NCBI GenBank assembly: GCA_030704615.1
Contig: CM060734.1
Coordinates: 12,214,001-12,278,000, forward strand
Direction: 5' to 3'
From: Takakia lepidozioides
Taxonomy: Eukaryota > Plantae > Bryophyta
Length of the DNA stretch: 64,000 bases
Both the position numbers and the translations under genes were made by a program. Of the stretch, positions 12,811 to 34,291 are shown piece after piece. Each line of letters starts with the position of its first letter. Within the stretch, counting starts at the first letter, position 1. The notes beneath the pieces were generated by a model that was given only the letters and a program-made list of their open reading frames with translations, did not search any database and was not told the DNA's origin.

Positions 12811-13130
12811 TGGTCCCCTTGCACCTATATGTATGTTTGGAGAGGCAGATGAAAAGCACATGTATTGACTCCCCATGGATTTGTGAAGGGGAAGATGAAT
12901 GTTAGGAGCTGCACTTGGCTTTTGTGGCTTTCGAAACCATAATAGAAAATCAACAATGTAAAGGTAATGACGAAACACAAACACACGCACAACCACCAAA
13001 CCCTTTCTTGGGTACACATATTCCACCATTTTTATTTCCGTACACGTATGCATATACCCAAACTGAAGCATGGATATCCATGGAAACATACTACACATCA
13101 TGTGACAGGTCACAGAAGTTATAGGTGTAC

Positions 13131-15565
13131 CTAATTCCGTCTGGCACGACGACGATGGTATGATCTCACGTCTAGTACAAAATCTTCGTCCCCACTCACT
13201 TCACCCCCGTTCCCATGATCAGTGCTAGAATCATGATCTCCATCTGTTCTTTCGTTTCCAGACGCAACTGGCCGTTGGACCTGTAGTCGTCCTCGGAGTA
13301 CGTTCAGTTGTCTCTCTGGTCGATTTCCACTCCTATCATGAATACCATGTAGGGTATCAGGCCTGTTCACAGGTTGGTCACCAACAAAAGGTTGCATAAT
13401 TCTTTGCCGTTTATGGGCTTGTCCCGGATTTCGTGGTGGCCTTGGAGCAGGTCTCGTATAAGGAAGGCTACTCGCACGTACATCAGAGGGGTCGACATGA
13501 GAGGAAGGGGCATGAGATGGACCAGCGAGGGTCGAGGGAGCACGGTTCACATGTGGACGTCGTCGGGCCAGATGAAACGACAATGGCCGGTCGTCGTCAT
13601 CCGATGGTTTGACTTGCAGAAGTCCCGCAGCAGAAGAACCATCTCCCAATATCGGAGTAGCGATGGAAGGAATTACATGAGGGGGAAAGAGACTAGATGG
13701 ACCAGCATGGGATGGACCGGCTTGAGAAAGATAAACATGAGATGGAGCGGGGTGAGATGAAGCACGGTTCACAGGGGCACGATGTCGGTGAAGGAATGAC
13801 AACGGCCGGTTGTCATCATCCGACGATTCGACTTGCACATCTCCCGCAGTCCGTGGAACTTGTGGTGGGGGAGAGTTGACCTCAACTTCATTGTTGAGAG
13901 TGTGCTCCACTGGGGGAAGGGGGTCCGCAATTGGGATGATACCATGTCATAGTTCATCAACAACAAGGTCATCAACGGATGATGCATTGCAGCATCATCG
14001 TCATTAAATTCATATGGGTCATGTGGAGGATTGCCCACATCATCGGACCCATCCCAACCGTCGGAGTCGAAGTCCCTCGCAGTGTCAGTGTCATCATTGC
14101 TGTTAGATTGGACCTCTGAGGTAGATTCTTCAGACAAGAGATTCTTCTCGTACCATATAGATGCGTCACTTGCTCTCATCTCTCGCAGTAGCCTACAATT
14201 CGTGTAGACATAAACCAATTTGTTAGCCCTGGCAGGATTCAAGCTGTTGCGAATCTTGTTGTGAACAAACGAGTAACTGCTCCAGTTCCGCTCACAGGAC
14301 GAGGTAGAGCACACTTGAGCAAGAATACGCTTTGTAATGGGAGCTAACGTTCTTGCTCCTGCTCCAATCAGATCCCACCATTCATGTGGCAACATGTTCA
14401 TTGCTTTTGGATCCGGCATGTCATGGAAAGGATTCTGCCGATCCGAGAAGCACTCGTACTCGGACAACGCTCGCTCTGCCATGTTCAAGGGCACAAGTTG
14501 CATGATGACCCGTACAAGCCCGGCTTTGGCATCCACATCGTCTCTCAAATCCGTATTGTCCAGCAATAATGGATTCAGCAAGGCCCCCGCATAATGCAAG
14601 TCCGTGCGAACCATCCGTTTGCGGTTGTAAAATGCATCCTCGGTCCTTGCCGCCAAATCATCGTCCATAGAAAATGGAGGACGCCTCAAGGATTGCACGT
14701 GATTCTCAAGGTTTTCCAATATCAACCATGCTTTACCCATTATTGGTTGTTTTCCATCAAACTCCCGCAAAGCAATCAACACTGGCTCCACCATGTATAC
14801 AAAATTTGCACATTTCGCCCAGAAATCGTCGGAGCGAATGATTGCGCGGACCCTCCAATTTTTGCTCAAAGACTTGGACTTACGAGAGTCGCGTAAGGTG
14901 CCCACATACGCATCCCATTGAGGGTCAATGATCACCTGCTCCAGACCCGCCCTCACAGTCACCAGTCGATCCACCATCAAAAAATTTGTGGCAAAGCGGG
15001 TTTCACCCGGGATCCTAAGGCTGTATTTGGGTTCATGTTTTCTAAACAATGCCAGAGGGATGTGATGTGTACGAATGAACGTCACAACCGACTTTGCCCT
15101 TTTTACTAGTTGTTTCATCCATGATTCTTTTCCCCAATCCTCCAAAAGGAGATCAAAGATATGAGCAGCACACCCTTGGTAATATAGATGGGGATATCGT
15201 ACAATCAAAATATCGGCCATATTAACCATGTTAGATGCATTGTCCGTGCACACTTGGACAATTTTATCAGCTCCAATTTTATCGATGTAACTCGTCAACA
15301 ACCCTGCTTGATAACGTGCATCTTTTCTCTCCCCGCTTGTGTCAACGGATCCTAAAAATTGTTCCCCCGCATGACAGACCAGCATGACATTGAACAGTGG
15401 TCGATTAGTAACAGAACTCCAACCGTCCGCACATATAGTGCTTCCATATTTCCGGAGAGAATCACCTGTCTTTTCATTCACCTTTTGGGTGAGGTCAGAC
15501 ATAGCCTCTTCTAGCAATCTCGTGCGGAGATCGCGATAACTCGGAGGTGTGTATGTGGACTTGGA
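13131..15565 (-). pseudogene. hAT-type transposase copy 1: catalytic core (DUF659-like), dimerisation domain and low-complexity tail, inverted
   Basis: ICADGW, VCTDNA, CAAH, ETRFAT, EWW and SSCERNWS. A frameshift near 13960 joins the 657-aa ORF to the 259-aa ORF. Confidence 0.92.
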
Positions 15566-19656: not shown

Positions 19657-20662
19657 GCGACCGCCAATTATGGCGGTCGCTTTGTTTTTCGAAATTAAAA
19701 AGGAAGTAGCGACCGCCATATAGGCGGTCGCTTAAAATTTGTTTAAAAAAAAAGCAAGATTGGTGGTCGCACTGGCGGTCGCTTTATTTTTTGAATTTTA
19801 AAAAAAGAAATAGTGACCGCTATCTTGGCGGTCGCTTCAATTTATTTTAAAAAAAAAACAAGATTGGCGGTCGCATTGGCGGTTGCTTAATTATTATGGC
19901 GGTCGCTTTGTTTTTCGAAATTAAAAAGGAAGTAGCGACCGCCATATTGGCGGTCGCTTAAAATTTGTTTAAAAAAAAAGCAAGATTGGTGGTCGCACTG
20001 GCGGTCGCTTTATTTTTTGAATTAAAAAAAAGAAATAGTGACCGCTATCTTGGCGGTCACTTCAATTTATTTTAAAAAAAAAACAAGATTGGCGGTCGCA
20101 TTGGCGGTTGCTTAATTTAAAAAAGAAAACAGGCGACTGACGTATTGGCGGTCGCCTAATTTTAAAAAAGAAAACAAGCGACTGCCGTATTGGCAGTCGC
20201 ACAATTTTGTAAATATGTACAGAACAAGCGACCGCCATATGGTGGTCGGATAATTTCAAAAATATATAAAAACAGCGACCGCCATTGGGCGGTCTCTTAA
20301 TTTAAAGAATATATAGAAAAACAAACGACCGCCATAAAATATAAAGATTAAAAGCGACCACCTTACTGGCGGTCGCGTTTTTTTTCAAAATATTAAAAAT
20401 AAAAGCGACCACCATATTGGCGGTCGCTTTATTTTAAATATATTAACAAATGAAGCGACCGCCATACCGGCAGTCGCATTATATTTCGAAATAAAAAACA
20501 ATATTGACCGCCATACGGGCGGTCGCTTAAATTTAAAAATATACAAAATAGAAGTGACCGCAATATTGCACAAAATGAAAGGAAATAAAAGTGACCGCAG
20601 TAGTGGCGGTCGCTTGTTTTTTCATAAATAAAAGTACGGACCGTAGTATTAGCGGTCGCTTA
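19657..20662. repeat. Palindrome array GCGACCGCC-N(4-7)-GGCGGTCGC upstream of the unit-2 transposase
   Basis: Many hairpin units with AT-rich spacers, including an internal duplication of about 225 bp. Confidence 0.95.
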
Positions 20663-21088
20663 ATTTCAAAATTACAACAAATATGGTTGTACAGCCTTTT
20701 TCGGGTGGGCGCAATTGGTTCGTTATTTATTCATTGCACTTTCACTTTCATCCCTCTTTGATCATATATAAGGGAGGAGGGTCACCAAGCTCCTCACTTC
20801 TTTTGGCGCAAATACTTGAGGTTGCTTTGGATGTTCTCTTCCATTGAACGAGAGTGTAGCCCAAGAGGAGGGTGCGCACATTTTGCCGTTGTGGCTTCCA
20901 CCAAAGCCACTTCAGCAGATTGTGTATAAGCTCAACACTACAACCCACATCGACCCACTTGGGTTGTTGACAGGTGTAGAAGTGTTGGGCTATCGCATTG
21001 CACTCTACATTCACAACACGTTCATTTATAGGTGACTGTTTTTTGTTGCTTACATCGCTAGGTCCCAGGGAGTGGATATTGGGTGAAG

Positions 21089-21976
21089 ATGAGGGAGGAA
21101 TTGAGCCCTTGGTATACGACAATCCCGAACACTGTCAGTGCCACTGGTAGTGTTTAGTGCAACCTATGTGGATTAAAACTTTCTTATCGTAAGGATCGGT
21201 TGCTCGCTCACCTCGGCTATAAAGGTGTGAAGAGCGCTGGGGTGGGTTTATGCCCCAAAGCATCTATGCTGGTAAAAAACCACTTTGCCCAGTGTGGAGG
21301 CAATATTCCAATGTCTTTGGATCTGGACATGACCTCCGAGCAGAACACTCCATCTTCCCGTTAGGATGCCCCGATTAGTACCCAGGGCGACTCTTGTGAG
21401 GCTTCGGGTGTCCTTGGACAAGTGGGTTGTGCCGGAGCAATACCTGCTTCAACACCTCTTTATACCCCTACACTTCAATGGAGTAGAGGATTACGGCAGC
21501 AATCCATGCAAGAAGGTCTTAACTTGTCTGCGAAAAGACAGTTGGCGCAGTTTTTCTTCGAGGCCAACATACCATTTAATGTGGCAAGGCTTCCGGCATT
21601 TGTTTCTGCCGTTAGAGCAACCTCGGAGTCCAGATCCACGTACGTACCTCCGACTTATCACAATCTCCGCACATGATTGCTAGAAGACGTCATGACCGAG
21701 CTTACCCAAAAGGTCAACGATAGGATGGGCGAGTGCATCAGAAAATATGGAAGCACTATATGTGCGGATGGTTGGAATTTTGTCACAAGCAGACCGTTGT
21801 TCAATGTCATGCTCGTATGACTAGCTGGAGAACAATTTTTGGGATCGGTCGACACTAGCGGCGAGAAGAAATATGGACGTTATCAATGCCAACTATTGAC
21901 GGACTTCATCGAATAGGTCGGAAGTGATAGAATCGTGCAAATATGCACAGACAATGCCACTAACATGAGAAACACT
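21089..21976 (+). pseudogene. hAT-type transposase copy 2, segment 1
   Basis: MREE...CNLC...LAHLG, FFFEANIPFNV, TICADGW and ICTDNA, with several in-frame stops. Ends at the retroelement TSD. Confidence 0.9.
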
Positions 21977-22063
21977 TGTCGTGTGCATACATATCGCTAC
22001 ACAACTACATCGCTGTCCAAACCACACCACACATATATGCACAATAAAGTAGTCTGCCACAAT
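21977..22063 (-). repeat. Repeat B2 (terminal copy, about 87 bp)
   Basis: Near-identical to 22420-22505. Confidence 0.93.
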
Positions 22064-22417
22064 GATAAAAAGCTAAAGGACACACACTCTCAACACAAGA
22101 AATATGAAATCCATTGCTATCACTTTTTAAAATAGAAGTCGAGCCAGGGGCACCCCAAGCTATGGGGACTCCACCCCACAACAACCTACACTCCCATCAT
22201 AAGCACACACAGCTTTTAAACGCAAGAAGGAGCTCGGTCGCGCAGGCTCAACTCGAGAGAGATGAGCTGCGCGACTGCCGCTCTCGTGAAGATAAGACGG
22301 ACCAGGTGTCAAACTAAACTTGACACCTGATTTAACACTTGACCTAAATCCAAGTGTTAAATACAAATAACTAGTTTTATTCTAGCTGTTTTCACACTGT
22401 GCTTATTTAACTTGACA
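22063..22417 (-). repeat. Repeat A2 (about 355 bp)
   Basis: Direct repeat of 33391-33749, with about 9 substitutions plus small indels by eye. Confidence 0.95.
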
Positions 22418-22419
22418 GC

Positions 22420-22505
22420 TGTCGTGCGCATACATATCGCTACACAAACTACATCGCTGTCCAAACCACACCACATATATATGCACAATAAAGTATCTGC
22501 ACAAT
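22420..22505 (-). repeat. Repeat B1 (internal copy), separated from A2 by GC within the palindrome GACAGCTGTC
   Basis: 22414-22423 reads GACAGCTGTC. Confidence 0.93.
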
Positions 22506-22516
22506 CGCCCCCCTAG
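22505..22516 (-). other. Polypurine tract of the DNMT retroelement
   Basis: The minus strand reads CTAGGGGGGCGA followed by TTGTGC, directly abutting B1. Confidence 0.7.
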
Positions 22517-22764
22517 CTGGTGGATAGGTCCCTCTACCTCCAGATAGCTACAAGATGTAATAGCCACAGCCGTACTAAGTCCTCTATCACTGTCCCTATT
22601 GTACTCAAACTCTATAGACCAAGAGGCCGGGTACAAGAGTAGCCCCATCGTTAGTCGCCGTCTTGCAATCTGTGAACTTGAGCCAGGATCTCGTGTGTTC
22701 AAGGTCTCCTAGTAGCTGGGCCTTGCGTTTCTTGTTAGCCTTCCATGGTTGTATCCACTCCCAC

Positions 22765-22905
22765 TATCCAATGCAATGTGGACATAACCAATCCCCATCG
22801 GAACCATCTCAAGAGGTGGTCAAGCATCCCATATGCCAACCTCTAGAGCATCGATCACACCCAGCATGGTGGCTGCCCCTTTAGCAGACCCACAACATGC
22901 ACCTC
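22765..22905 (-). pseudogene. PHD finger at the C-terminus of Pol
   Basis: Across several 1-bp indels the sequence reads CMLCGSAKGAATMLxCDRCSRGWHMGCLTxPLEMVPMGDWLCPHC, a C4HC3 pattern, followed by a stop. Confidence 0.85.
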
Positions 22906-24180
22906 AAACCTGCAGATACCACTGCCAGGTTTGGGTCAATCCTGCCATCGACATTCGGAAGGTGACATGGCGCACAATTACGCACATGGTCCTTCCAAGT
23001 TATGCCATCCCGACCCTCCAAGACCAAGACGCCTGAGGGCAAGACCTCTCGAACCCTCAAAATAACACGTCCTGCAGTCACATCCAGGGTCGTAGGAGCA
23101 GTCTGCTGCAGATAGACATAGTCACCAGGGTTGAATCTCCGAACCCCAGGACGATAGCCCCCACCACGTATGGTAGCATACCTCAACGTATCACGGTGTT
23201 GTGCAATGGCAAGGTTCTCGAAAGCCATGGCATGACTCTCTTGAACAACTCTGCACGCTGCTCACATGCACGTGCCCACACGTCCGGATCGTCAAGGTTA
23301 AGAACTGTAGCAGCTTCTCTGCGAATGGATGTAGGCAAATCCGGCTCTCGGCCAAAGAGAAGAAAGTATGGTGAGAAGGAGGCAAGTGATGCTTGCTTGC
23401 TGAACCTGTAGCCCATGGCTAACCAGGGTAACTGAAGGTCCCAATCTCCTAGTGTCCCTTCTGCAAGCCATACTTGCGCAAACCCCTCTTTACTGTCTGA
23501 ACAACTCTCTCTGCCAAGCCATCGGCCTCAGGATGATCCCGAGAAGTGGTGCGGTGGTCTATCAAGGCCTTGTCACACAAAGCCTGAAACTCCCCCAAGA
23601 ACTCTCTCCCTTGGTCCGTGAGTACCTCAGCTGGAGCACCGAATCGGCTAAGCACACAATCCAGAATGCATACGCAGCTCCCTCACTAGCCTTATCAGGC
23701 AATGGAACCAATTCAATCCACTTGGAAGTGCTCCACCATCACCAACACGTACTTGTTGTGGCGCATGGTCAGTGGCAACGGCCCTGCGAAGTCAAGACTC
23801 CACCTGTAGCCCAATCCCATGATCGGAAGAGGGTGCAATTGTGGAGTAGGGGCGTTGAATGAAGCACGCACCCTGTCACACACCATGCACCTAGCCACAA
23901 TTGTTGCACCTCTGTGTGCATACCACGCCACCCAATACTGCCCCTGCAGTAGACTATGAGTGCGTCGCACCCCAAAATGCCCCAACTCCTCATGGGCATG
24001 CCGCACTAACCGTGCCCGCTGTGTTGGGTGAGGCACAATCCTCACTCGACCATCCTCCCACACTCGGAGCAGGTGTGTCCCCTCCCACCTGAACCTCTTG
24101 GCTCGTTGTAGGATCCGATCCCTCTCCTTGGCAGTCATAGTGGCTGCCGTGTCTCCAGTGCGGAGGTAGTCCAACACAAC
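22905..24180 (-). pseudogene. DDE integrase
   Basis: HEELGHFG...CMVC zinc motif, WSLDFAGPL, VLTDQGREF, ADGLAERVV and RFNPGDYVYL. Confidence 0.93.
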
Positions 24181-24199
24181 TGAATCCTCATGTATATCT

Positions 24200-25800
24200 T
24201 TGGCGCCACCTGCTCATTGCTGGCCTCAGGGTCCTCAGACACTTGATCTACAGTCATCCCTGTTGCAGGTCCAACCTGGCCTTCCGCTGCCAAGATACAC
24301 AGAAATGCAGATGCATGCCATCCGGGCACCATCTCCTCGTCCGTCTCACCATGCCACCGAGCTCCAGTGTCATCCTGCTGGCTCGTGCATGGATTGCGAC
24401 TCAACCCATCTGCATTGCGATTGACCAAACCCGGTCGATGCACCACCTGAAAGTCATACTCTTGAAGGATGAGTGCCCACCGTGCAAGCTTCCCCGTAAG
24501 CTTGTCTGACTCCATCAACCACTTGAGTGGTTGGTGATCCGTGACAAGGGTGAAGAGATTGCCGTATAGATAGCACCTGAAGTGTGCCACGGCCCACACT
24601 GCAGCTAAGCATTCTCCCTCATATGAGCTATACTTAGACTCTGCAGCATTGTTCGAGCGGCTAGCATAAGCCACTACGAACTCTCTTCCCTCATCATCCA
24701 CCTGTGTGAGCACCGCTCCAAGCCCCAGCATGCTCCAATCTGTATGCAGCTGAAAAGGACGCCCCCTGATAGGTCGTCTCAAGATGGGCGCCGAGGTCAA
24801 CCTCGCCTTGAGCTCTTGAAAAGCTTGTTCTTGCTCATCTTCCCACTGCCACTCCTGGTCCACCTTGGTCAGCTTGGTTAGAGCCTTTGCAATGGCACTA
24901 AATCCCTTAACAAACCGTCTGTAATAGTTTGCTAACCCCATGAAAGCTCGAACTCGGCTCACATCCGTGGGGCGTGGAACCTGTGCAATGGACTCTACCT
25001 TAGTCTGCTGTACCCCCAATCCTCCAGGATATATCATGTGACCCAGATACTCAATCTGGTTGTGGAAAAACTTGCACTTGCCCGGATGTAACTTCAATCC
25101 GTGCGTCCTCAAGCGCTCAAATACCCCCTGAAGGTGTCTCTCATGCTCCTCCACCGTAGCACTAAAGATGATGATGTCATCTATGTAGCACCGAGCAAAC
25201 TCCACCCCTGCTAGAATCCTGTCCATGACTCTTTGAAACTCAGCGAGCGTTTTTAAGCCCAAATGGTAAGAACCGCCACTGGTATAGGCAATCCTTCCCG
25301 TGCTCATTGATCCCCCAGAATGCCGTCTTTTGCTTATCCGCCTCCTTGATCGGCAACTGGTGATATCCGGATCGTAAATCCAACGTGCTAAAGACCTTGG
25401 AATGCCCAATGGCATCAAAGATCTCCTCTGGTGTTGGCATGGCATACCTATCGGACTTGGTCTGACGATTTACAGGCCGGTAATCACCGCACATACGTCT
25501 CTCTCGTCCAATTGCCATAGACATCCTTCTTGGCTGGCATCACTGTGGCTGAAGCATACTCTCCACCAGAGAGCTCCACCAAACCTGCCTCCCAGAGATC
25601 TTGAGTCCTCATCTGAATCAAAGACCTCTCCATGTCACTGTATCTATAGGTCTCCGAAAGATTGGCGTGTCAGTGGCCAACTCAATACGATCTCTTGACC
25701 CTTCAGTGCTCCCAAGTCCTTCAAACTGAAGGCAAAGCAATTCCTGTAAGCCCTCAGGAACCGCCGTATACGTCGTCTCTCTCCTCCGGTGACAATGGGT
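24200..25800 (-). pseudogene. Reverse transcriptase and RNase H
   Basis: RMCGDYRPVN, LDLRSGYHQ, LPFGLKNA and YIDD; RNase H motifs LHTDWS, YASRS, ECLAAVWAV and VTDHQPL. Confidence 0.97.
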
Positions 25801-26179
25801 CCAATGTCAGGCTCCCAATTGTCCTCCGTAACTGCAACCTTAAGTCCAGTGGGCTTAGAGGTAGAGGACGTCCCGTGGTTGCTATGCTGCAACCTCTTGA
25901 GCAGTACCCCTTCCTCAGCAATGACAAGCCTCATCCTGCCCCATCATCTCATCATTGAGAACCTCCTCATCCCGAGAAGAATCCCCAACCTCATCCATCA
26001 CAGCTGCCTTGGCTGCCAACTCCCTCTGAACCTCGAGCACCTCCCACGTGTGCCATGGATGTCTACACCCCGTGGTCCTCACCGGCTCGCCCCCTCTCGC
26101 TGCCTGTACCGTCTCGGTAGGCAGAGAGACCGTCAAGGGAAGTGCACTCCGCACTCTACGTTGCTCAGCCATAGCCAAG

Positions 26180-27120
26180 CTGATAATCCAGGTCAAGCAA
26201 TTGAGATCCATTGCTTGCCCCAACACCTGACGACGTGATGCCTCAGAAAGAGAAGGCACCGCCGTGGTCCCAGTGGAAAACCCATAGCCCGCTCTCGCTC
26301 GTCGGCATTAGGCTCCACTAACTGCTGCAACTGCATCCCACAAGGCCAGGTCCACCATCCCGAAAAGCATGGGATCCTGGGAAGCTGAGCAGTGTAGGTA
26401 ATGCTGCTCGTGGTTGACCCACCCTGTTGACCACTGCCAAAGGCGAACGGTCATCGTGTCTCACACGTTGAGACTGCCTCCCTGTGTCCAAAATGCCATC
26501 CACGGTGAGGTGTGCTGGCCGCTGCACCCCATCATCATGCACGCTTGAGCAGTGCGGGTGGCATCAAGTTAGTCCACCATAGCCGTGGACGATGAGCCCG
26601 TGACCCACTGCAGCTGCATCCAGCAACACTGCTGACCCAAGCCACGACCGGACTTGATGCACACTGGCCATCACCCTGGCCCGAGAATCACCCATCAGTG
26701 GCACATTCTCCAAGATGTATGCTGGAGATACAGCTTGATGAAGCTGCAAGTGGCGCAAAATCCGCACCATCTCCCAAAACAGACCCGTCCTCGAGTCTCG
26801 CAATCCATTGCCATGCCCGGCTGATGAATGCCCTTGGCAGGGCCAACCTGCCACTACAGATCAATGGAGCCAACCTGCTCCAAATCTTGCGCCCCCAACA
26901 AAATGTCTGCTGGCAAGGCTTGTTGGTATCCACGAACTGCAGACACAGGCAACAAGTCAGGGTACTGCTGCCAACTGAGCACATGGCGCAGTGAGACGCG
27001 TCGTGCAGTCTCATCCCTCTCCACATACAGGTAACGCCTTACCCTACACCTGCCTGTAGCACAGCAGCCAATCCGGTGCTGATCCCGCCAAACAAGTCCA
27101 GAAGGCAAATGCCTTCATCC
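26180..27120 (-). pseudogene. C5 cytosine DNA methyltransferase domain, DNMT3/DRM-like motif style
   Basis: Motif I LLDLFGGISTGLAAV, motif II YLYVERD, motif IV AGWPCQGHS, motif VI ILENV, motif VIII AHRPRLWWTN, and motifs IX-X ERERAMGF...RRQVLGQAM. The domain is interrupted by frameshifts. Confidence 0.92.
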
Positions 27121-27449
27121 GGATTGCCACACAAGAGGTGTGGTGTCCAATGGCGACAACTGAGGTGGTCCTGGTGCAATCACCGCACTCTCCTCCTCTC
27201 CTGACGGTACAAAAGCTCTACCCAGGCTTGTTGCACCCGTCCATCAGCAGCTGCTGCAAATCCTTGCTCGTACCCCACAATGGAGTGTGAGCAACCATGG
27301 CAGGCAACTCCCGTACCATGCATGTCATCCTGCTCTGCTGGAGGTGGCACATCCTCTGCATGGGCATTGCCTTCCAGCAACTCTCCAGGCCAACTAACTG
27401 CAGCTGTAAGGCGGCTAGTGTTGGCATCTTGCCCCGCTGGGCAGCCGCA

Positions 27450-27860
27450 ATACCCCCAATGAATGTCACAGGGAGCTGTGCACGCGACCATCCCCTGACT
27501 GCCATCCAGGCCTGTAGGATGCTGACTCCTCCCAAAAGTCCAGGGTGAAGCCCATGGGGTATAAACACTGCCCCACCAACGAGGACATCGTAAGAGACCG
27601 CGTCTGTCACAATGGCCTTGGCTCGCATCACTGAGCCATCTAGGATGATCCGGCTGCAGTCTAATGGCCAACTGATGCCGTGTCATGCCCCGAGCCTGCT
27701 CTGATCCTCCCAGAGATGTCTGTATCTGGAAAGGACAAGGCTCCATATCCGCCTCCATGAGGCCCAAACCTGCAATAGCAGCTCTGCCCAACATCAGTGG
27801 CTGAGCTCCTGAGTCCAACAGACCCGCAGTGGCCGGTACTTCTTGCCTGCCGGTCCACTC
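27450..27860 (-). pseudogene. Retropepsin-like aspartic protease
   Basis: LDSGAQPLMLG and a downstream YDVLVGG. Confidence 0.8.
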
Positions 27861-28189
27861 AAAGTGAAAATGCCTCCCTGGTTGTCTAACAAGACAACTC
27901 CAGGTGTCACCATGGCGCGCTCAAAGGCTGGCCTAGCTGGCAGCTCCGTCAACCTGGCAGCTGCAGCTTGCCAGGGCCCCGTGGCAGTCTTGACCCTCAA
28001 ATCCGAGGATCCCTCTGCCACTACACCTTCCACTAACTCCGCAGAAGATGAAGTGACCTCCCCACTCTCACAGAGTGTTGCTGCTAGTCTGAACACTGCA
28101 GCTGGTCTCCCCCCGGCGTCGCAATCATGGTTGCCGAGAACAGTGGGGCTTGACACACAGAGGTGGCTGCCCCAATAACACACCGGCTG

Positions 28190-30055
28190 CACTAGCCTTG
28201 GTAGCAGGTGTCAGTGCTGCACGTGTAGCTCTCTCTCCCCAATGGCATAGTAACCTCCGCCTCGGTAACAGTCGGGCGAGAACTAGGTGCCATGGATGGC
28301 GTTGACACTGTCTCCGCCAAGGTGAATGACTGAGGCAGCCTTGCCTGACGGCTTGCCTCCCCACGTTGTGGATCCAACTCCACCTCTGCACCTCGTGGCT
28401 CAGGAACTCGTGCTGCTCCTCGAGTCACGGCTGCAGCAGACTCCACCTGCTCTAGTGGTAGTGCTGCTCCGCACATGAATCCCATGCCTCCCATATCTCC
28501 TCCCTCAGGAGCAGGAGGTGGACCATCCCGCCTGGGAGCCGGTACCGCCTGAGCTATAGCCATGGCAGCGAGCCTCTGCTCTAGCTGCTGCTGAAGCCGA
28601 TTGGCCATGCCTTGGTCAACACCCTGACCTCCGCGTCCTTGGCCATGTGGAGCTTGCCCTTGGCCTGCACCTCGTGCCCGACCACCTCGTCCTCTTTGGG
28701 CTGGTCCACCTCGCCCCCGGCCACCATTGTTCCCTTGGAACTGGCCTGGGCGCAACTCAGGATGCAAGTCATAACACTGGGCATCTCCATGCCCATACTT
28801 GCCACAATGCCCACACTGCAACTGTGCAGGCTGTGCTTGTGCCGGCCTTTTGCCACTCTCTGGGCAATCTCTCTTGACATGGGGTCCTCCACATGTCCAA
28901 CATATCACCCCTGGTTGCTGTTGGCCTGCAAAAGATGCCACGGGCCTCTGCACCTGAGGTCCCCTGTAAGCTCCATGGAACTTGGGCTGGGCAACCTTGC
29001 CCCCCTGACCACGCTGTTGGGCAGTCCCTTGTGCCTGTGGGCTGACAGCTGCCCCGTAGCGCTATGGGCCTGTAAAGGCATGTCTTGCCAAATCAATTGT
29101 AACAATCGCTCCTCCACCATGTTGAGCTCAATCCGCTCAGCCAAAGAAGAAACACATCTGCTAATGTGGTTGGGGGTGCTTGTAACAGGGTTGCATCTCG
29201 CACCCTTCTCTTGAGCTCCTTGTCCAGAATTCCATACCAAAACTGGATTGCCTGAGCTTCAGTAACCCCTTGGGTCACACTTATCAAGCGCCTCATACGA
29301 GTTTACGCCTCTCGCAGGCTCTCACTGGGTTTGCACTGGAAGTCTTGCAAACTTCGCAGCTTCTCTGTCCGTACACCTTGGTAGTTCCTCCGCAAACTCC
29401 TGGAAGAACTCCACCACCGGGTTGAATCTAGGCACATGTGTTGTAGTCGTGGCAGGAGGAGTAGTTAGCACTTTTGAACTGGTTACACCTACAGAAAGTA
29501 CCAGCACTACTTGCTCCACTACTAGTGCTGGCAGTGGGAGCTATTGGTACTGATGCAGCTACTGTTCGCGTCGTGCCTCGAGTAAGGGGGAAGACGTAGT
29601 CAGGTGACCAATATATCCTCCACTCCTCAATCTCTGCTTCATGTCCTCGCCTGAACTCGTGGTAATTGTCCATAGGCGGGCCTTCCAAATGCTGGAACAG
29701 TCCCTTCCACGCCATGAATGGGGGTGAATAGCTGTGGATTGCGCATCTGCTGAAATCACACCAGCTGTCGAACTCTTGGATAAAGTCATCCAACTCAATT
29801 GTGCCCACAGCTCCAGAGTACCTACGAGGCCCCTTGGTAGCTCCATACATCTCCTCCATGTCGTCCCACAACAATGGCGAATGAAAGTGCACACCTGTTG
29901 TTTGAAGCCTCCGAGTCTGTGTCTGACTCTACAGTAATTGGGGTAGCGGTGAAGGTGGTCTGAACCGAATACCTCGTCTTGTGAACCCACGCTCACTGTT
30001 ACTGCCTGTAGCCGTACTCCCCTCAAAACCCTTGGGTAACTCCGTAATAACACTC
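28190..30055 (-). pseudogene. gag: Gag with two zinc knuckles
   Basis: LDDFIQEFDSWCD capsid-like region and QFWYGILDKELKRRV; CWTCGGPHVKRDC and CGHCGKYGHGDAQC; an RGG-rich tract. Confidence 0.85.
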
Positions 30056-30593
30056 ACAATGTGCACCTCCTCCACGTGACACTATAAAGGCTCTAGTACT
30101 AATCTAATAGTGACACGGGTGGCACCTGTTGCAGTCTAAGGGTCATATCCCAATGGCTCAGGGCACCTGCACCTGCATCCACCGCAAGAACTCCTATGGT
30201 TGGCTGGTCATCAACCCAGCCTCACCATAGAAGAAACACTGGTGGTCTTGCTGGTCATCACTCCAGCCTCACCACCGACAGCATACTCTAGGATTGACCG
30301 GTGATCAAATCCGGCCTAATCCCTATGAAAGCAAGCGCCCACACAAAACCAACATGGCGCACAGTCAAGCATGCAGGTGTTGGGGGGATCCAAACACAAG
30401 AAATCAAAATTTCAACACCCCCACACCAAAATCCAGCTGCAATGCTGATCCTGCATAATAGCCCAGCCCAAAACCCCGGACTGACTGGCCTCCACCAAGA
30501 GAGGCTTTGGCAACTACAAGTACAAGGTAATGAAAATAGTACAGAGATGGAGGGGAAGAATAGAAGCCCGCCCAAGCAAGATCTAATCCTGAT

Positions 30594-31345
30594 CTATGCT
30601 ATCAACTTCCAGACTTCTCTCAAAGTGCCTCGCTCTGCGTGATGGTAAGGTGTAGGAGGTATATCTATGTCCAGAAACCTGCCACTAACCTTGTCCCAAG
30701 CTACAGTAGCTCGCTCTAACCAACCCTCCTCCTCTTTCTGCCAGGTAGAGACAAAGCAATACTCCCCTATCTCCCGCTCACTGAACACTAAAGAAAACAT
30801 AGGTAGGGTCTGATAGTCTCTCAACTCGAAAGCTTTGAGACGGTTGCGGGTGTCCTCATTGCGAATGACTGCATCTCCTTCACGCACAACAAACATGTCA
30901 TTGCTGATGAACCCCCGCTTGTGGTTGCCCTGTGCAGAGCGTATCCGGCTGCAACCGTGTCTGATTGCACAAACTTGTGTAGCTCCTGCTCCTCTGCTCC
31001 AGTACACCACGGCCTTGTGGCTGAACACCTTGGTCCCCGGGGCTGTCTTTGGCTGTGTGTTCCAAGCCTAGATTTCACCCACTTTGGTATTTCACCTACA
31101 GCTGCAGAACTGCTGGCTCCAACAGAGTTCTGACTGTCCAAGGCGATATTGAGGCCCTCAACGCCAACTACAGCTGTCTGTTGTCTACTGCTAATGCCTG
31201 ACTCCTAGTATGCAATCAACTCGTCCAACTGTTCTCCACTCAAATCAGTCTGAGTTCCTTGGGAAACATAAATCCTGTCCCCTTGTGTGCACAGGCTAAG
31301 AGAAGAGACCTGCCCTTCAATTACGTCCTCATTTCCCCCAGCCAT
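30594..31345 (-). pseudogene. Extra ORF of unknown function upstream of gag
   Basis: Overlapping protein-like frames (30594..31028 and 30821..31141) extend to an ATG at 31345. I recognised no motif. Confidence 0.45.
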
Positions 31346-33376
31346 GCAAGGAGTACATCCACAGATTTGTCTCTCATATAGACCAGCACAGGTTCTAGAG
31401 ACAGGATTGTGGATCTTTCATGGCACACTCACACTCTAAAAATTCCATAGATTTTTAGCAGAGTCCCAAAAACGAAAAACCAGGTCTAGATAGGTAGATT
31501 TCCCTTTTCTGTAGGTCCCTGCGCAAGTTTTGGGTCCAACGGCCTTGGTAGGCCAAAGTTATGGCCAAACAGGCTCTATCTAATTTAAATTAGATCAAAG
31601 AACGATTTTTTTTTATTTTTTATTTTAAAATACTTGTCTTGGTTCCTGTTCCCTGGTTACCTACGGGTTCCCGAGGCCGTTCCCCTCGCACTGTGAGCAC
31701 ACTACTGCCCCATTTCCGAGCGCACTCCACAGCAGCAGTCTTCCGTGAGAGAGAGAGAGAGATAGAGCTATGGCGGGACTTACAACAACAGCACAGGGCA
31801 TCACCGCGGCCCTTGGCATCAGCGGGCATGGGGGCATCTCCTATTTGAGGTATTCGGATTGACCTAACCTGATCTTCACAAAACCGCAGTCCATCAGCGT
31901 TGGTTGTCAACAGAACCTGATCAATCATGCCACTTTCATTGTGGCGCAAGCATGTGCTCTGGTCACGCTTGGTGTAGCGTTGTGCTTGACTGGCATTGTC
32001 ATCCTCCACATGTTCATATCATGCCTGCGATCACCACCCAAGTCGACCCCAACCAGTATTGACAGTGAGTGCAACTCGGTTGTTCTCCACACGCTCCATC
32101 ATGCCTGCGATCAGCTTCCACACAAGGTGGTCCATTTCCGATGCCTGGCCTCCGCCCTCAATGTAGATGATACTCTTAACTCCCAAATGTATGGGCCTGA
32201 GCAGCTCTCCAGCTATCCATTTCACTCCAGGCACTTCGTATTCATCCTAGGGACGTTGTGGTAGTACAGATATCAGCGTTCATAGCTTGCGTGGCAGGTT
32301 TGAATCTTTCTTACAGTAGTCACATTGTAACAGAGCCATCAAGCAACAAATTGCAGTAGGCAATCGTTTACTGGATCCTTGCAACAGCCTTCCTTGCAGG
32401 ATTCTTTACCTAGTTGGTTCACATTAGCAAATGAATCAGCATCTTCATCTCGTTAAGTGGTTGGAATGCCTGAGCGGTCACTGCCCATCAATCAAACTCA
32501 GACGGAGAACGATTTGCTTGGTCTGCAAGGACACTCTTTGTCAGTAGGTGTTTGCCCCAAACAGCCAGAGCTGCAGCAGGTCTGCACACCCAGCCCGCAG
32601 GTGGAGCAAGACTGCAAGATATTTGGGTTCACGTTGACAAACAAGCGGACATGGCCAGTCTCCAGTCCCCAGATCACTCAAGGTGAGGATTCTGAAAGCT
32701 CAAGGCATTGCCCAGTGGCAGAAATAGCTAAGCCTTCTACCTATGGCAGCTTGGGGACAGGAGCATCACTTGTCATGGTTGAGCAAGAGATAACCCCACA
32801 ATCCACGGGCCCCAACACCAATCTTGGAGGGCACGGACGACACTCGCAAGGCCTGACCACTCAACAACCTCTACTGCCGCACAGCATCCTTGCCTGCAGC
32901 AGGAGTCACCAAGGCCCTGGCAGCTACGGTCGCTATGGTCGGTTTTCCCTGCATGTGATAGTATCGCGCAGCTGGTGGGTGCACTAAAGGCTGGCAATGA
33001 AAGAGCACAGAAAGCAGCACTTGAGGCTTGTTTCCTACTACGTCAAGCCTGATCCTCCAGTCCTGCCGAGGTAGAAAAAGCACAAGCCATGGCAGCGTCA
33101 GAAGCCATCCCTATGCTACAACTGTTGATGAGGACATGCCCCCCACGCTTTCAGAACAAGGCAGACAGCCTGCTGCAATGCCTGCCAGAAGGACGAGAAT
33201 ATTGTTGGCTTTGAACTGTTGCAGCGACACTTCGAGTGGTTCCCGCCTTCCTGTTATGCTCCACTAGGCACACATAGCCAGTCTACCTGCAGGCTCTCGT
33301 AACCAAGCTATATTATAATAGTGCTTAAAAACAGGAACGTCACATTTAGCTTAGCCCTAGAAAACTAGATACAGTT

Positions 33377-33391
33377 TCATCTCTCTCGAGT
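33377..33391 (-). other. Putative self-priming primer-binding site (PBS)
   Basis: TCATCTCTCTCGAGT (33377-33391) is the exact reverse complement of 33583-33597 inside repeat A1. No TGG-type tRNA PBS is present. Confidence 0.75.
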
Positions 33392-33749
33392 GATAAACAA
33401 AAGCTAAAAGGACACACACTCTCAACACAAGAAATATGAAATCCATTGCTATCACTCTTTAAAATAGAAGTCGAACCAGGGGCACCCCAAGCTATGGGGA
33501 CTCCACCCCACAACAACCTACACTCCCATCATAAGCACACACAGCTTCTAAACGCAGGAAGGAGCTCGGTCGCGCAGGCCCAACTCGAGAGAGATGAGCT
33601 ACGCGACTGCCGCTCTCGTGAAGATAAGACGGACCAGGTGTCAAACTAAACTTGACACCTGATTTAACATTTGACCTAAATCCAAGTGTTACATACAAAT
33701 AACTAGTTTTATTCTAGCTGTTTTCACACTGTGCTTATTTAACGTGACA
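33391..33749 (-). repeat. Repeat A1 (5' terminal, 359 bp)
   Basis: Direct repeat of 22063-22417 with no adjoining B segment. Confidence 0.95.
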
Positions 33750-34291
33750 CACTGCAGACATGTTGGTGGCACGTTATCCCCATATGTACTATCAAGGTTG
33801 TGCTGCTCATATCATTGACCTCCTTTTGGAAGATTGGGGAAAAGAACAGTGGGTTAAACAACTTGTCAAGCGAGCGAAGACTGTTGTGTCGTTCATCCGC
33901 ACACACCACATCTCTTTGGCAATATATAGGAGGCTCGAACCCAAATACAGCCTCCGCAATCCAGGCGAAACTCGTTTTGCCACTAACTTCTTGATGGTGG
34001 ATCAGTTCGTGACGGTGAAGAGCAGTCTGGAGCACACCATCATCGATTCTCAATGGGATGCGTACACAAGGACATTGCGGGACTCCAGAAAAGCCAAGTC
34101 ATTGGGCAAAAGTCGAAAAGTTCGAAATAACATTCGCAACGATGATTTCTGGAAGAAATGTGAAAACTTTGTTTGACAACCAGTAATGGGCAAGGCATGG
34201 TTACTAATGCAAAATCTTGATAAGCACGTCCAATCCTTGAGGCATCCTCCCTTCTCCTTGGAACCTGAACTTGCGGACAGTGCTGAGGATG
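33750..34291 (+). pseudogene. hAT-type transposase copy 2, segment 2
   Basis: TADMLVARYPHMYYQGCAAH...ETRFATNF...FWKKCENFV continues segment 1 in frame across the TSD. Confidence 0.92.

Follow-up and report, generated by a model that had tools for sequence, protein, structure and literature searches.

How can a retrotransposon that encodes an integrase of the DDE type come to be bounded by split direct repeats, which reviews treat as the mark of tyrosine-recombinase elements without target-site duplications (TSDs)? The question is raised by a 64,000-nucleotide stretch of the genome of the bryophyte Takakia lepidozioides (contig CM060734.1 of assembly GCA_030704615.1, positions 12,214,001 to 12,278,000; here called the window, with coordinates counted from its first letter), in which a Ty3/gypsy element carries a single long repeat (a) at its 5' end and the series b-GC-a-b, b being a short repeat, at its 3' end. 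The element is a member of an old streptophyte lineage of self-primed Ty3/gypsy retrotransposons of the KnitGypsy-Dnmt3 type that carry a DNA methyltransferase (DNMT) and a PHD finger. From the comparison of ten insertions we infer that this is a real and ancient green-plant lineage, in which the integrase makes use of a small palindrome within the long terminal repeat (LTR), and not of the LTR ends, to insert the element. In the textbook view, split direct repeats belong to tyrosine recombinases, and DDE integrases belong to complete LTRs and the ends of linear complementary DNA (cDNA); this link is broken here, in at least three streptophyte classes.

Anatomy of the integrated element

The coding strand of the element is the minus strand of the window. 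From the 5' end, its parts, including a primer-binding site (PBS) as well as a polypurine tract (PPT), are as follows.

21977-33749, coding strand minus: whole element, in the order a1, PBS, genes, PPT, b1, GC, a2, b2
33750-33753, no strand: right copy of the TSD, CACT (direct reading)
33391/33399-33749, minus: a1, the sole repeat at the 5' end, starting with TGTCA at 33749 and with the PBS at its end
22506-22519, minus: G-rich PPT abutting b1, on the coding strand ...AGCTAGGGGGGCG, then A and, across the border, TTG
22420-22505, minus: b1, internal short repeat and U3 start, directly 3' of the PPT
22414-22423, no strand: internal palindrome GACA-GC-TGTC, GACAGCTGTC, with the central GC at 22418-22419, intact by direct reading
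22063/22068-22417, minus: a2, second long repeat, starting with TGTCA on the coding strand (blastn, repeat finding)
21977-22063, minus: b2, terminal short repeat and 3' integrated end, ...CACGACA (blastn, repeat finding)
21973-21976, no strand: left copy of the TSD, CACT, with the same letters as 33750-33753

Read on the coding strand, the element starts with TGTCAC directly after AGTG and ends with CACGACA directly before AGTG (CACT on the plus strand), and b1 and a2 meet in CACGACA-GC-TGTCAA. The integrated ends, TGTC... and ...GACA, are in other words the two halves of the internal palindrome minus its central GC. When the element and one copy of CACT are removed, the host reading frames of both flanks continue. 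At about 22063, the end of a (..TATCA) abuts the start of b (TTGTG..), so that the a2/b2 join is a head-to-tail fusion of the U5 end (unique 5' region) with the U3 start (unique 3' region) that share one A. The two a repeats are 97.2% identical over 351 nt and the two b repeats 94.3% over 88 nt (both by blastn), and the coding-strand sequence directly before b1, AGCTAGGGGGGCGA, is a polypurine tract. A preliminary description of the locus, made from the letters alone, had given the repeat blocks, the GC, the 4-bp CACT duplication and the restored host frame just as blastn, repeat finding and direct reading return them; its account of the a2/b2 join as a fusion of the PBS-defined and the PPT-defined ends was likewise borne out by direct reading. 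The 64-kb window holds no further copy of the element according to blastn and repeat finding, and no tandem repeats were found within the element.

Within a, a perfect 10-bp hairpin is present in both copies (22300-22326 and 33632-33658), the arms of which hold TGTCAAG and TTTGACA. The arm heptamer is the same as that at the a2 terminus; the hairpin, which is not obviously conserved in other species, might offer the integrase a further binding site or be coincidental.

Self-priming and the LTR made by reverse transcription

Neither a PBS of the transfer RNA (tRNA) type nor, in the window, a tRNA gene was found. The sequence that begins at the last A of a1 is complementary to a site within a itself.

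33377-33391, minus: self-primer binding site, coding strand ACTCGAGAGAGATGA, beginning at the last A of a1
33583-33597, minus: predicted transcript 5' end and self-primer in a1, coding strand TCATCTCTCTCGAGT, with the same sequence in a2 at 22251-22265

The PBS of the window is a perfect 15-nt complement of 33583-33597, a match reached by none of 300 shuffles. In six copies of the family, a stretch of 12-15 nt that starts with the last A of a1 pairs without a mismatch with a site in a located 160-207 nt upstream, and shuffles of a reach that pairing length 0-1 times in 300. Comparison of four sequence versions of this helix (the window, three similar Calypogeia copies, L002 and Closterium) revealed that 11 of its 12 positions change on both sides, with all pairs being Watson-Crick; the pairs were counted directly, since the leader ends were misaligned, and the PBS helix missed, when RNAalifold was applied to a MAFFT alignment. 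In minimum-free-energy folds of the predicted leaders, the 5' end pairs with the PBS and a second conserved helix is formed, and in the Calypogeia copies a TATA-like motif is located about 31 nt upstream of the predicted transcript start. Covariation at 11 of 12 positions indicates a Tf1-like self-priming of the lineage, with the 5' end of the transcript being a predicted one. Like Tf1/sushi elements and the plant Tcn1 elements, for which self-priming has been predicted (PMC6317226), the lineage thus has a PBS complementary to its own transcript start rather than to a tRNA, with a second helix adjoining. Tf1 differs in having ordinary complete LTRs, and its integrase acts on linear cDNA ends.

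The second helix pairs AGTTGAGCC with GGCTCGACT (columns 13-21 with 145-153 of the leader alignment, right after the self-primer) in the window and in the Calypogeia fissa copies L001, L002, L015 and L016, and recalls the extra stem of the Tf1 priming structure.

As the PBS places the U5 end at the terminus of a, and the PPT places the U3 start where b begins, the LTR resulting from reverse transcription should be b-NN-a, where NN denotes the two central bases of the palindrome. PBS complementarity and PPT position hence agree with the LTR that had been proposed for the window copy. This predicted LTR is a circular permutation of the integrated repeat.

Recurrence of the layout in relatives

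Relatives were chosen via the similarity of their reverse transcriptase (RT)-RNase H proteins, and their flanking DNA was examined afterwards, a selection that should not bias the form of the repeats. The closest proteins are from the liverwort Calypogeia fissa (74-79% identity), Riccia sorocarpa (71%) and Marchantia polymorpha (64%), while identity to Closterium species and to Klebsormidium nitens is about 50%. Nine other independent insertions share the layout of the window copy (four from C. fissa, one each from Riccia, Closterium and Klebsormidium, and two from ENA contigs), spanning at least six assemblies and three streptophyte classes.

L001, C. fissa: a..b-NN-a-b, NN GC, TSD GTCA
L002, C. 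fissa: a..b-NN-a-b, NN AT, TSD ATGT
L015, C. fissa: a..b-NN-a-b, NN GC, TSD CTTT
L016, C. fissa: a..b-NN-a-b with a mutated a2 start (TGTC half), NN GC, TSD CCAT/TCAT
L018, Closterium sp. Yama58-4: a..b-NN-a-b, NN GC, TSD ATGA
L019, ENA contig: a..b-NN-a-b, NN AC, TSD AAAC
L017, Riccia: 3' b-NN-a-b only, no a1 within 12.5 kb upstream, NN GC, 3' flank CCTT
L013, Klebsormidium: 3' b-NN-a-b only, contig begins inside the element, NN GC, 3' flank ACGC
L020, ENA contig: 3' b-NN-a-b only, contig begins inside the element, NN GC, 3' flank TAAT

The junction GACA-NN-TGTC is found in the window and in all nine relatives, with NN being GC in eight of the ten. TSDs of 4 bp flank all seven complete copies, the window included, one of them with a single mismatch, so that the integrated ends recognised at the outset in the window (palindrome halves lacking two nucleotides between 4-bp TSDs) are the same in the relatives. 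Without exception, the 3' ends read b-NN-a-b (10/10) and the 5' ends a alone (7/7, window included). In the nine relatives the PBS abuts a1 and the PPT, TAGGGGGGCGA or GGGGGGCAA, abuts b1, and the a/b join is exact in 10/10 copies, later point changes in L015 aside. The same anatomy in nine independent insertions excludes chance. The preliminary description had anticipated three forms among further copies, namely A..BAB (the layout seen here), ABA..B and A..B. Only the first materialised; among the ten insertions there are no ABA..B, A..B or canonical forms, and none of the relatives has two complete LTRs with TSDs at the PBS- and PPT-defined ends. The flanks of the examined relatives likewise contained no solo a-b copies or other forms.

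In each Calypogeia copy, b1 resembles b2 and a1 resembles a2 more closely than either resembles the repeats of other copies; for L001, a1 and a2 are 99.4% identical and b1 and b2 100%, the latter in comparison to at most 91% identity to b of other copies. That the repeats of one copy are most alike implies that both members of a pair are remade from one template in each cycle and that the a2/b2 join is made anew.

Three loci were obtained from a metagenome scan, of which L004 and L005, both old and AT-rich, were left out of the count. In either of them, two stretches that weakly suggest a b...b pair lie 393 nt apart, and the junction reads AACA-AT-TGTT (L004 6641-7118, L005 3783-4269); a more distant sublineage, ending in TGTT/AACA, may thus share the permuted layout. 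A scan of viral contigs for relatives returned no matches. Several loci revealed no repeats even at relaxed settings and are hence uninformative: L006-L012 (one locus in several samples), L014 (Marchantia) and L021-L023 (one locus). Two peculiarities of the Calypogeia repeats deserve mention. The b1 of L002 has an internal duplication of about 22 nt (12916-12975) that is absent from b2, resulting either from a post-insertion event or from RT slippage. In L001 (at about 13598-13604), as well as in L015 and L016, a second CACGACA that is identical to the b terminus precedes the U5 end by 7 nt; this motif may have survived from an ancestral U5 end of the canonical type, or may serve as an alternative site of processing.

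Integration at the internal palindrome

The palindrome halves ..CGACA and TGTCA.. are conserved from Klebsormidium to the liverworts. The RT-defined ends vary (TTG.., GTAC.. or AGTG.. at one side and ..TTTA, ..CTTA or ..TTCA at the other) and mostly lack TG/CA. The internal palindrome GACA-NN-TGTC presumably holds both attachment half-sites of the integrase.

How might the a/b join and the integrated ends then be generated? Strand transfers guided by homology cannot yield a followed by b, so a joining of the U5 end to the U3 start is required. Taken as a whole, the most probable scenario is that of a self-primed Ty3/gypsy lineage in which the RT-made ends are joined and the integrase opens the palindrome of the PBS-proximal LTR. 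Once the cDNA has been synthesised, the right LTR would be connected through its U5 end to the left LTR's U3 start, before or during integration; the simplest, albeit unproven, joined intermediate would be a 2-LTR circle. Within the PBS-proximal LTR, both strands of the palindrome would then be nicked by the integrase after CA, and these paired nicks, 2 bp apart, would leave recessed CA-3'OH ends with 2-nt 5' overhangs, i.e. the ends of a 3'-processed retroviral cDNA. In retroviral integrase chemistry, such ends are the normal substrate of strand transfer. Concerted strand transfer would finally place a-genes-b-NN-a-b between 4-bp duplications, with the two central bases being lost. A 2-LTR circle opened at the PBS-proximal palindrome yields exactly the observed product. 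Moreover, only the observed permutation would keep the promoter and R-U5-PBS at the 5' end (R being the region repeated at both transcript ends) and a full U3-R at the 3' end and thus be replication-competent, which explains the persistence of the family. It leaves the absence of dead permutations unexplained.

Several points speak against this scenario. All evidence comes from integrated copies, ten insertions only, and the circle, the transcript end and the cDNA end are deduced from them. A symmetric 2-LTR circle has two identical palindromes and predicts A..BAB and ABA..B in equal numbers; A..BAB alone was found (10/10 and 7/7, binomial about 0.001). The process is hence directional, a random cut at either palindrome of a circle is disfavoured, and a directional cue that is as yet unexplained is needed. 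Such a cue may reside in the circle; alternatively, the route may do without a closed circle. Finally, the a/b join is tidier than the usual end-joined junctions of retroviral circles.

A farther-reaching version of the end-joining scenario, which is advanced tentatively and falls somewhat short of being probable, is that of an obligate third integration route: the DDE integrase would never use the RT-made ends and would always open end-joined cDNA at the built-in palindrome, invariably that of the PBS-proximal LTR, and would have done so since before the divergence of Klebsormidium, Zygnematophyceae and land plants.

Alternative explanations

The strongest competitor, although unlikely, retains the architecture and the attachment sites and dispenses with the closed circle. 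In one version, the integrase commits to the palindrome of the left LTR of a linear cDNA, cleaves it and integrates both halves, after which host end-joining connects the RT-made ends; the choice of this LTR would follow from its timing, as the left, PBS-proximal LTR is presumably the first to become double-stranded during reverse transcription. In the other version, the RT makes an end-to-end template jump, passing from the U5 end to the U3 start, and trimming by the integrase follows at the next GACA. Both would account for the strict directionality of 10/10 3' ends and 7/7 5' ends, and the template jump also for the exact a/b join with its single shared A. In addition, cDNA ends of the Tf1 type are ragged and require long processing (PMC11042837). 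On the other hand, both versions, as well as the timing argument, are themselves deductions; the former proceeds via a broken chromosome, and the latter requires a non-homologous jump that has no known precedent in LTR elements.

Much less probable is a tyrosine-recombinase retroelement of the DIRS, PAT or Ngaro type, or an element mobilised in trans by one, whose split repeats would stem from the integration of a recombinase-made circle. The A1...B1-A2-B2 split direct repeats are indeed the textbook signature of PAT and Ngaro. However, Pfam searches, which were run on stop-free pieces only, gave no match to a tyrosine recombinase (Phage_integrase) on either strand of the window element, in any frame, nor in L001, L013 and L018, the near-intact relatives included. 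RT, RNase H and integrase are of the Ty3 type with the DDE triad intact: the best solved relative is the Ty3 Gag-Pol (Ty3 intasome entry 7Q5B, E = 8e-91), with which the YxDD box can be aligned, as can D, D and E of the integrase, present in the L001 core. The assignment to Ty3/gypsy with a DDE integrase and without a recombinase that had been made from the window copy is thereby upheld. Furthermore, each of the seven complete copies has TG...CA ends and is flanked by a 4-bp TSD; TSDs are reported to be absent from DIRS-type elements.

Three further readings can practically be dismissed, namely a one-off integration gone awry, an artefact of the assembly, and a canonical a-b LTR element whose 5' LTR lost b and which gained an extra b: the window does hold one copy only, and a degenerate one, but the nine further independent insertions repeat the exact layout, palindrome and TSD pattern, which excludes the one-off event and the artefact, and the PBS abuts a1 and the PPT abuts b1 in all relatives.

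Models in which reverse transcription alone produces the TGTC/GACA ends or the a/b join (a second PPT, a polyadenylation signal in b, rolling synthesis on a 1-LTR circle, or cleavage of a strong-stop duplex) were considered separately and rejected, as they give A..B or never join a to b.

Comparison with known systems

The repeat layout has one precedent. KnitGypsy-Dnmt3 of K. nitens was noted to combine a DIRS-like repeat structure with Gypsy domains (de Mendoza et al. 2018, Fig. 4c legend, PMC5890265); neither the text nor the supplement of that study covers TSDs, the palindrome, PBS and PPT placement, self-priming or a mechanism. Common to both are a C5 DNMT embedded in the Gypsy pol and the DIRS-like repeat order, and the Klebsormidium copy L013 (KFL_000540030, about 50% RT-RNase H identity) has the DNMT, b-GC-a-b and the same CACGACA-GC-TGTCAC junction. 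The present lineage differs by an additional C-terminal PHD finger. The preliminary description had suspected a replication cycle distinct from that of known LTR retrotransposons. The layout as such was thus already on record, while no published mechanism for DIRS-like repeats in a Gypsy element was found in the literature searched. New in comparison to this literature are the end anatomy, the self-primer, the spread over three streptophyte classes, the strict directionality and the mechanistic reading.

With PAT, Ngaro and TOC-type elements, the lineage has in common the A1-internal-B1-A2-B2 order and an internal B1-A2 junction that corresponds to the joined termini of the element. It differs from them in that a DDE integrase takes the place of the tyrosine recombinase, and furthermore in its 4-bp TSDs (absent in DIRS, PMC8969392), TG...CA ends, RT and RNase H of the Ty3 type, and a C5 rather than a Dam-like methylase. 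Conversely, it agrees with Ty3/gypsy elements (Metaviridae) in its TG...CA termini (TGTC...GACA), in TSDs that are within the expected 4-5 bp, and in a pol of the order PR-RT-RNase H-IN (protease to integrase) with Ty3-type RT_RNaseH, H2C2 and a DDE (rve) integrase. Instead of two complete LTRs whose outer ends are the integrated ends, it has a only at the 5' end and b-NN-a-b at the 3' end. Such elements will be mis-annotated by LTR-finding programs built on the expectation of two full LTRs.

The integrases of prototype foamy virus (PFV) and human immunodeficiency virus 1 (HIV-1) cut a palindromic LTR-LTR junction (PMC1180852, PMC1905944), and 2-LTR circles can feed integration (PMC4372172). 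As presumably in the present case, a CA...TG palindrome contains both attachment half-sites, and in PFV and HIV-1 the integrase cut gives 3'-processed ends. The retroviral palindrome arises by joining of LTR ends, represents a side route and has four central bases, whereas the palindrome described here is built into the LTR, has two central bases and appears to be the only route. The old question as to whether an LTR-LTR junction can serve as a true integration substrate thus becomes testable with a defined 10-bp palindrome, clean ends with TSDs, and near-intact copies, and the covarying self-primer provides a second, independent handle on the replication cycle. If the obligate end-joined route holds true, split direct repeats would stem from cDNA topology and not from the type of recombinase, and the architectures of DIRS, PAT and Ngaro would have to be reread.

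Coding content and neighbouring features

The coding region of the window copy is degenerate. Three stop-free pieces of L001 placed by tblastn revealed the same gene order as in L001 (from about 29997 to 22770) with at least ten frame changes.

22770-29997, minus: degenerate gag-PR-DNMT-RT-RNase H-IN-PHD region (tblastn of L001 pieces and stop-to-stop map)
26567-26860, minus: fragment of a C5 cytosine DNA methyltransferase (Pfam DNA_methylase, E = 2.4e-11)
24138-25469, minus: RT and RNase H of the Ty3/gypsy type (Pfam RVT_1, RT_RNaseH_2, RT_RNaseH)
23500-24213, minus: integrase, H2C2 and DDE core region, frameshifted (Pfam Integrase_H2C2 on 23716-24213; tblastn)
22770-23225, minus: C-terminal PHD-finger region after the integrase (tblastn, 73% identity to the C-terminal piece of L001)

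The integrase core of the window is 69% identical to residues 563-797 of the L001 integrase (tblastn). Together with the 97.2% identity of a1 and a2, the amount of coding decay plausibly fits an old, dead copy. The near-intact L001 consists of one frame with two in-frame stops and encodes DNMT, RVT_1, RNase H, H2C2, rve and a C-terminal PHD finger (Pfam), while the Closterium copy L018 additionally has Retrotrans_gag, a zinc knuckle and an aspartic protease (Pfam). DNA_methylase matches were obtained for the window, L001, L013 and L018 (Pfam), and L020 and L021 have precomputed ones. The PHD finger follows the integrase where chromoviruses have a chromodomain (L001 12266-13009; window 22770-23225); its combination with a DNMT suggests chromatin-guided targeting or self-methylation.

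From the PBS to the first gag-like similarity, the leader of the window copy measures about 3.4 kb (30000-33376, minus), compared with about 1.7 kb in L001. It contains no tandem repeats and no Pfam match, except for a sub-threshold one to RNA_pol_Rpb2_6 on 31623-32018 (E = 9e-5, 22.2 bits against a cut-off of 23.4). The extra sequence could be an unrecognised insertion or a captured fragment.

The interrupted host gene resembles a hAT transposase. Its two open reading frame (ORF) halves were read and searched separately, never as a joined sequence, and the right half matches DUF659 (hAT-transposase-associated) with 30.2 bits, which is under the curated 34.7.

33754-34173, plus: host hAT-like transposase ORF, right half after the interruption, with the left half ending at 21976

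Just upstream of this gene, three 47-nt repeats are located at 20500-20680, each with a GACCGC...GCGGTC inverted core, which may be transposon-end repeats or repeats resembling miniature inverted-repeat transposable elements (MITEs).

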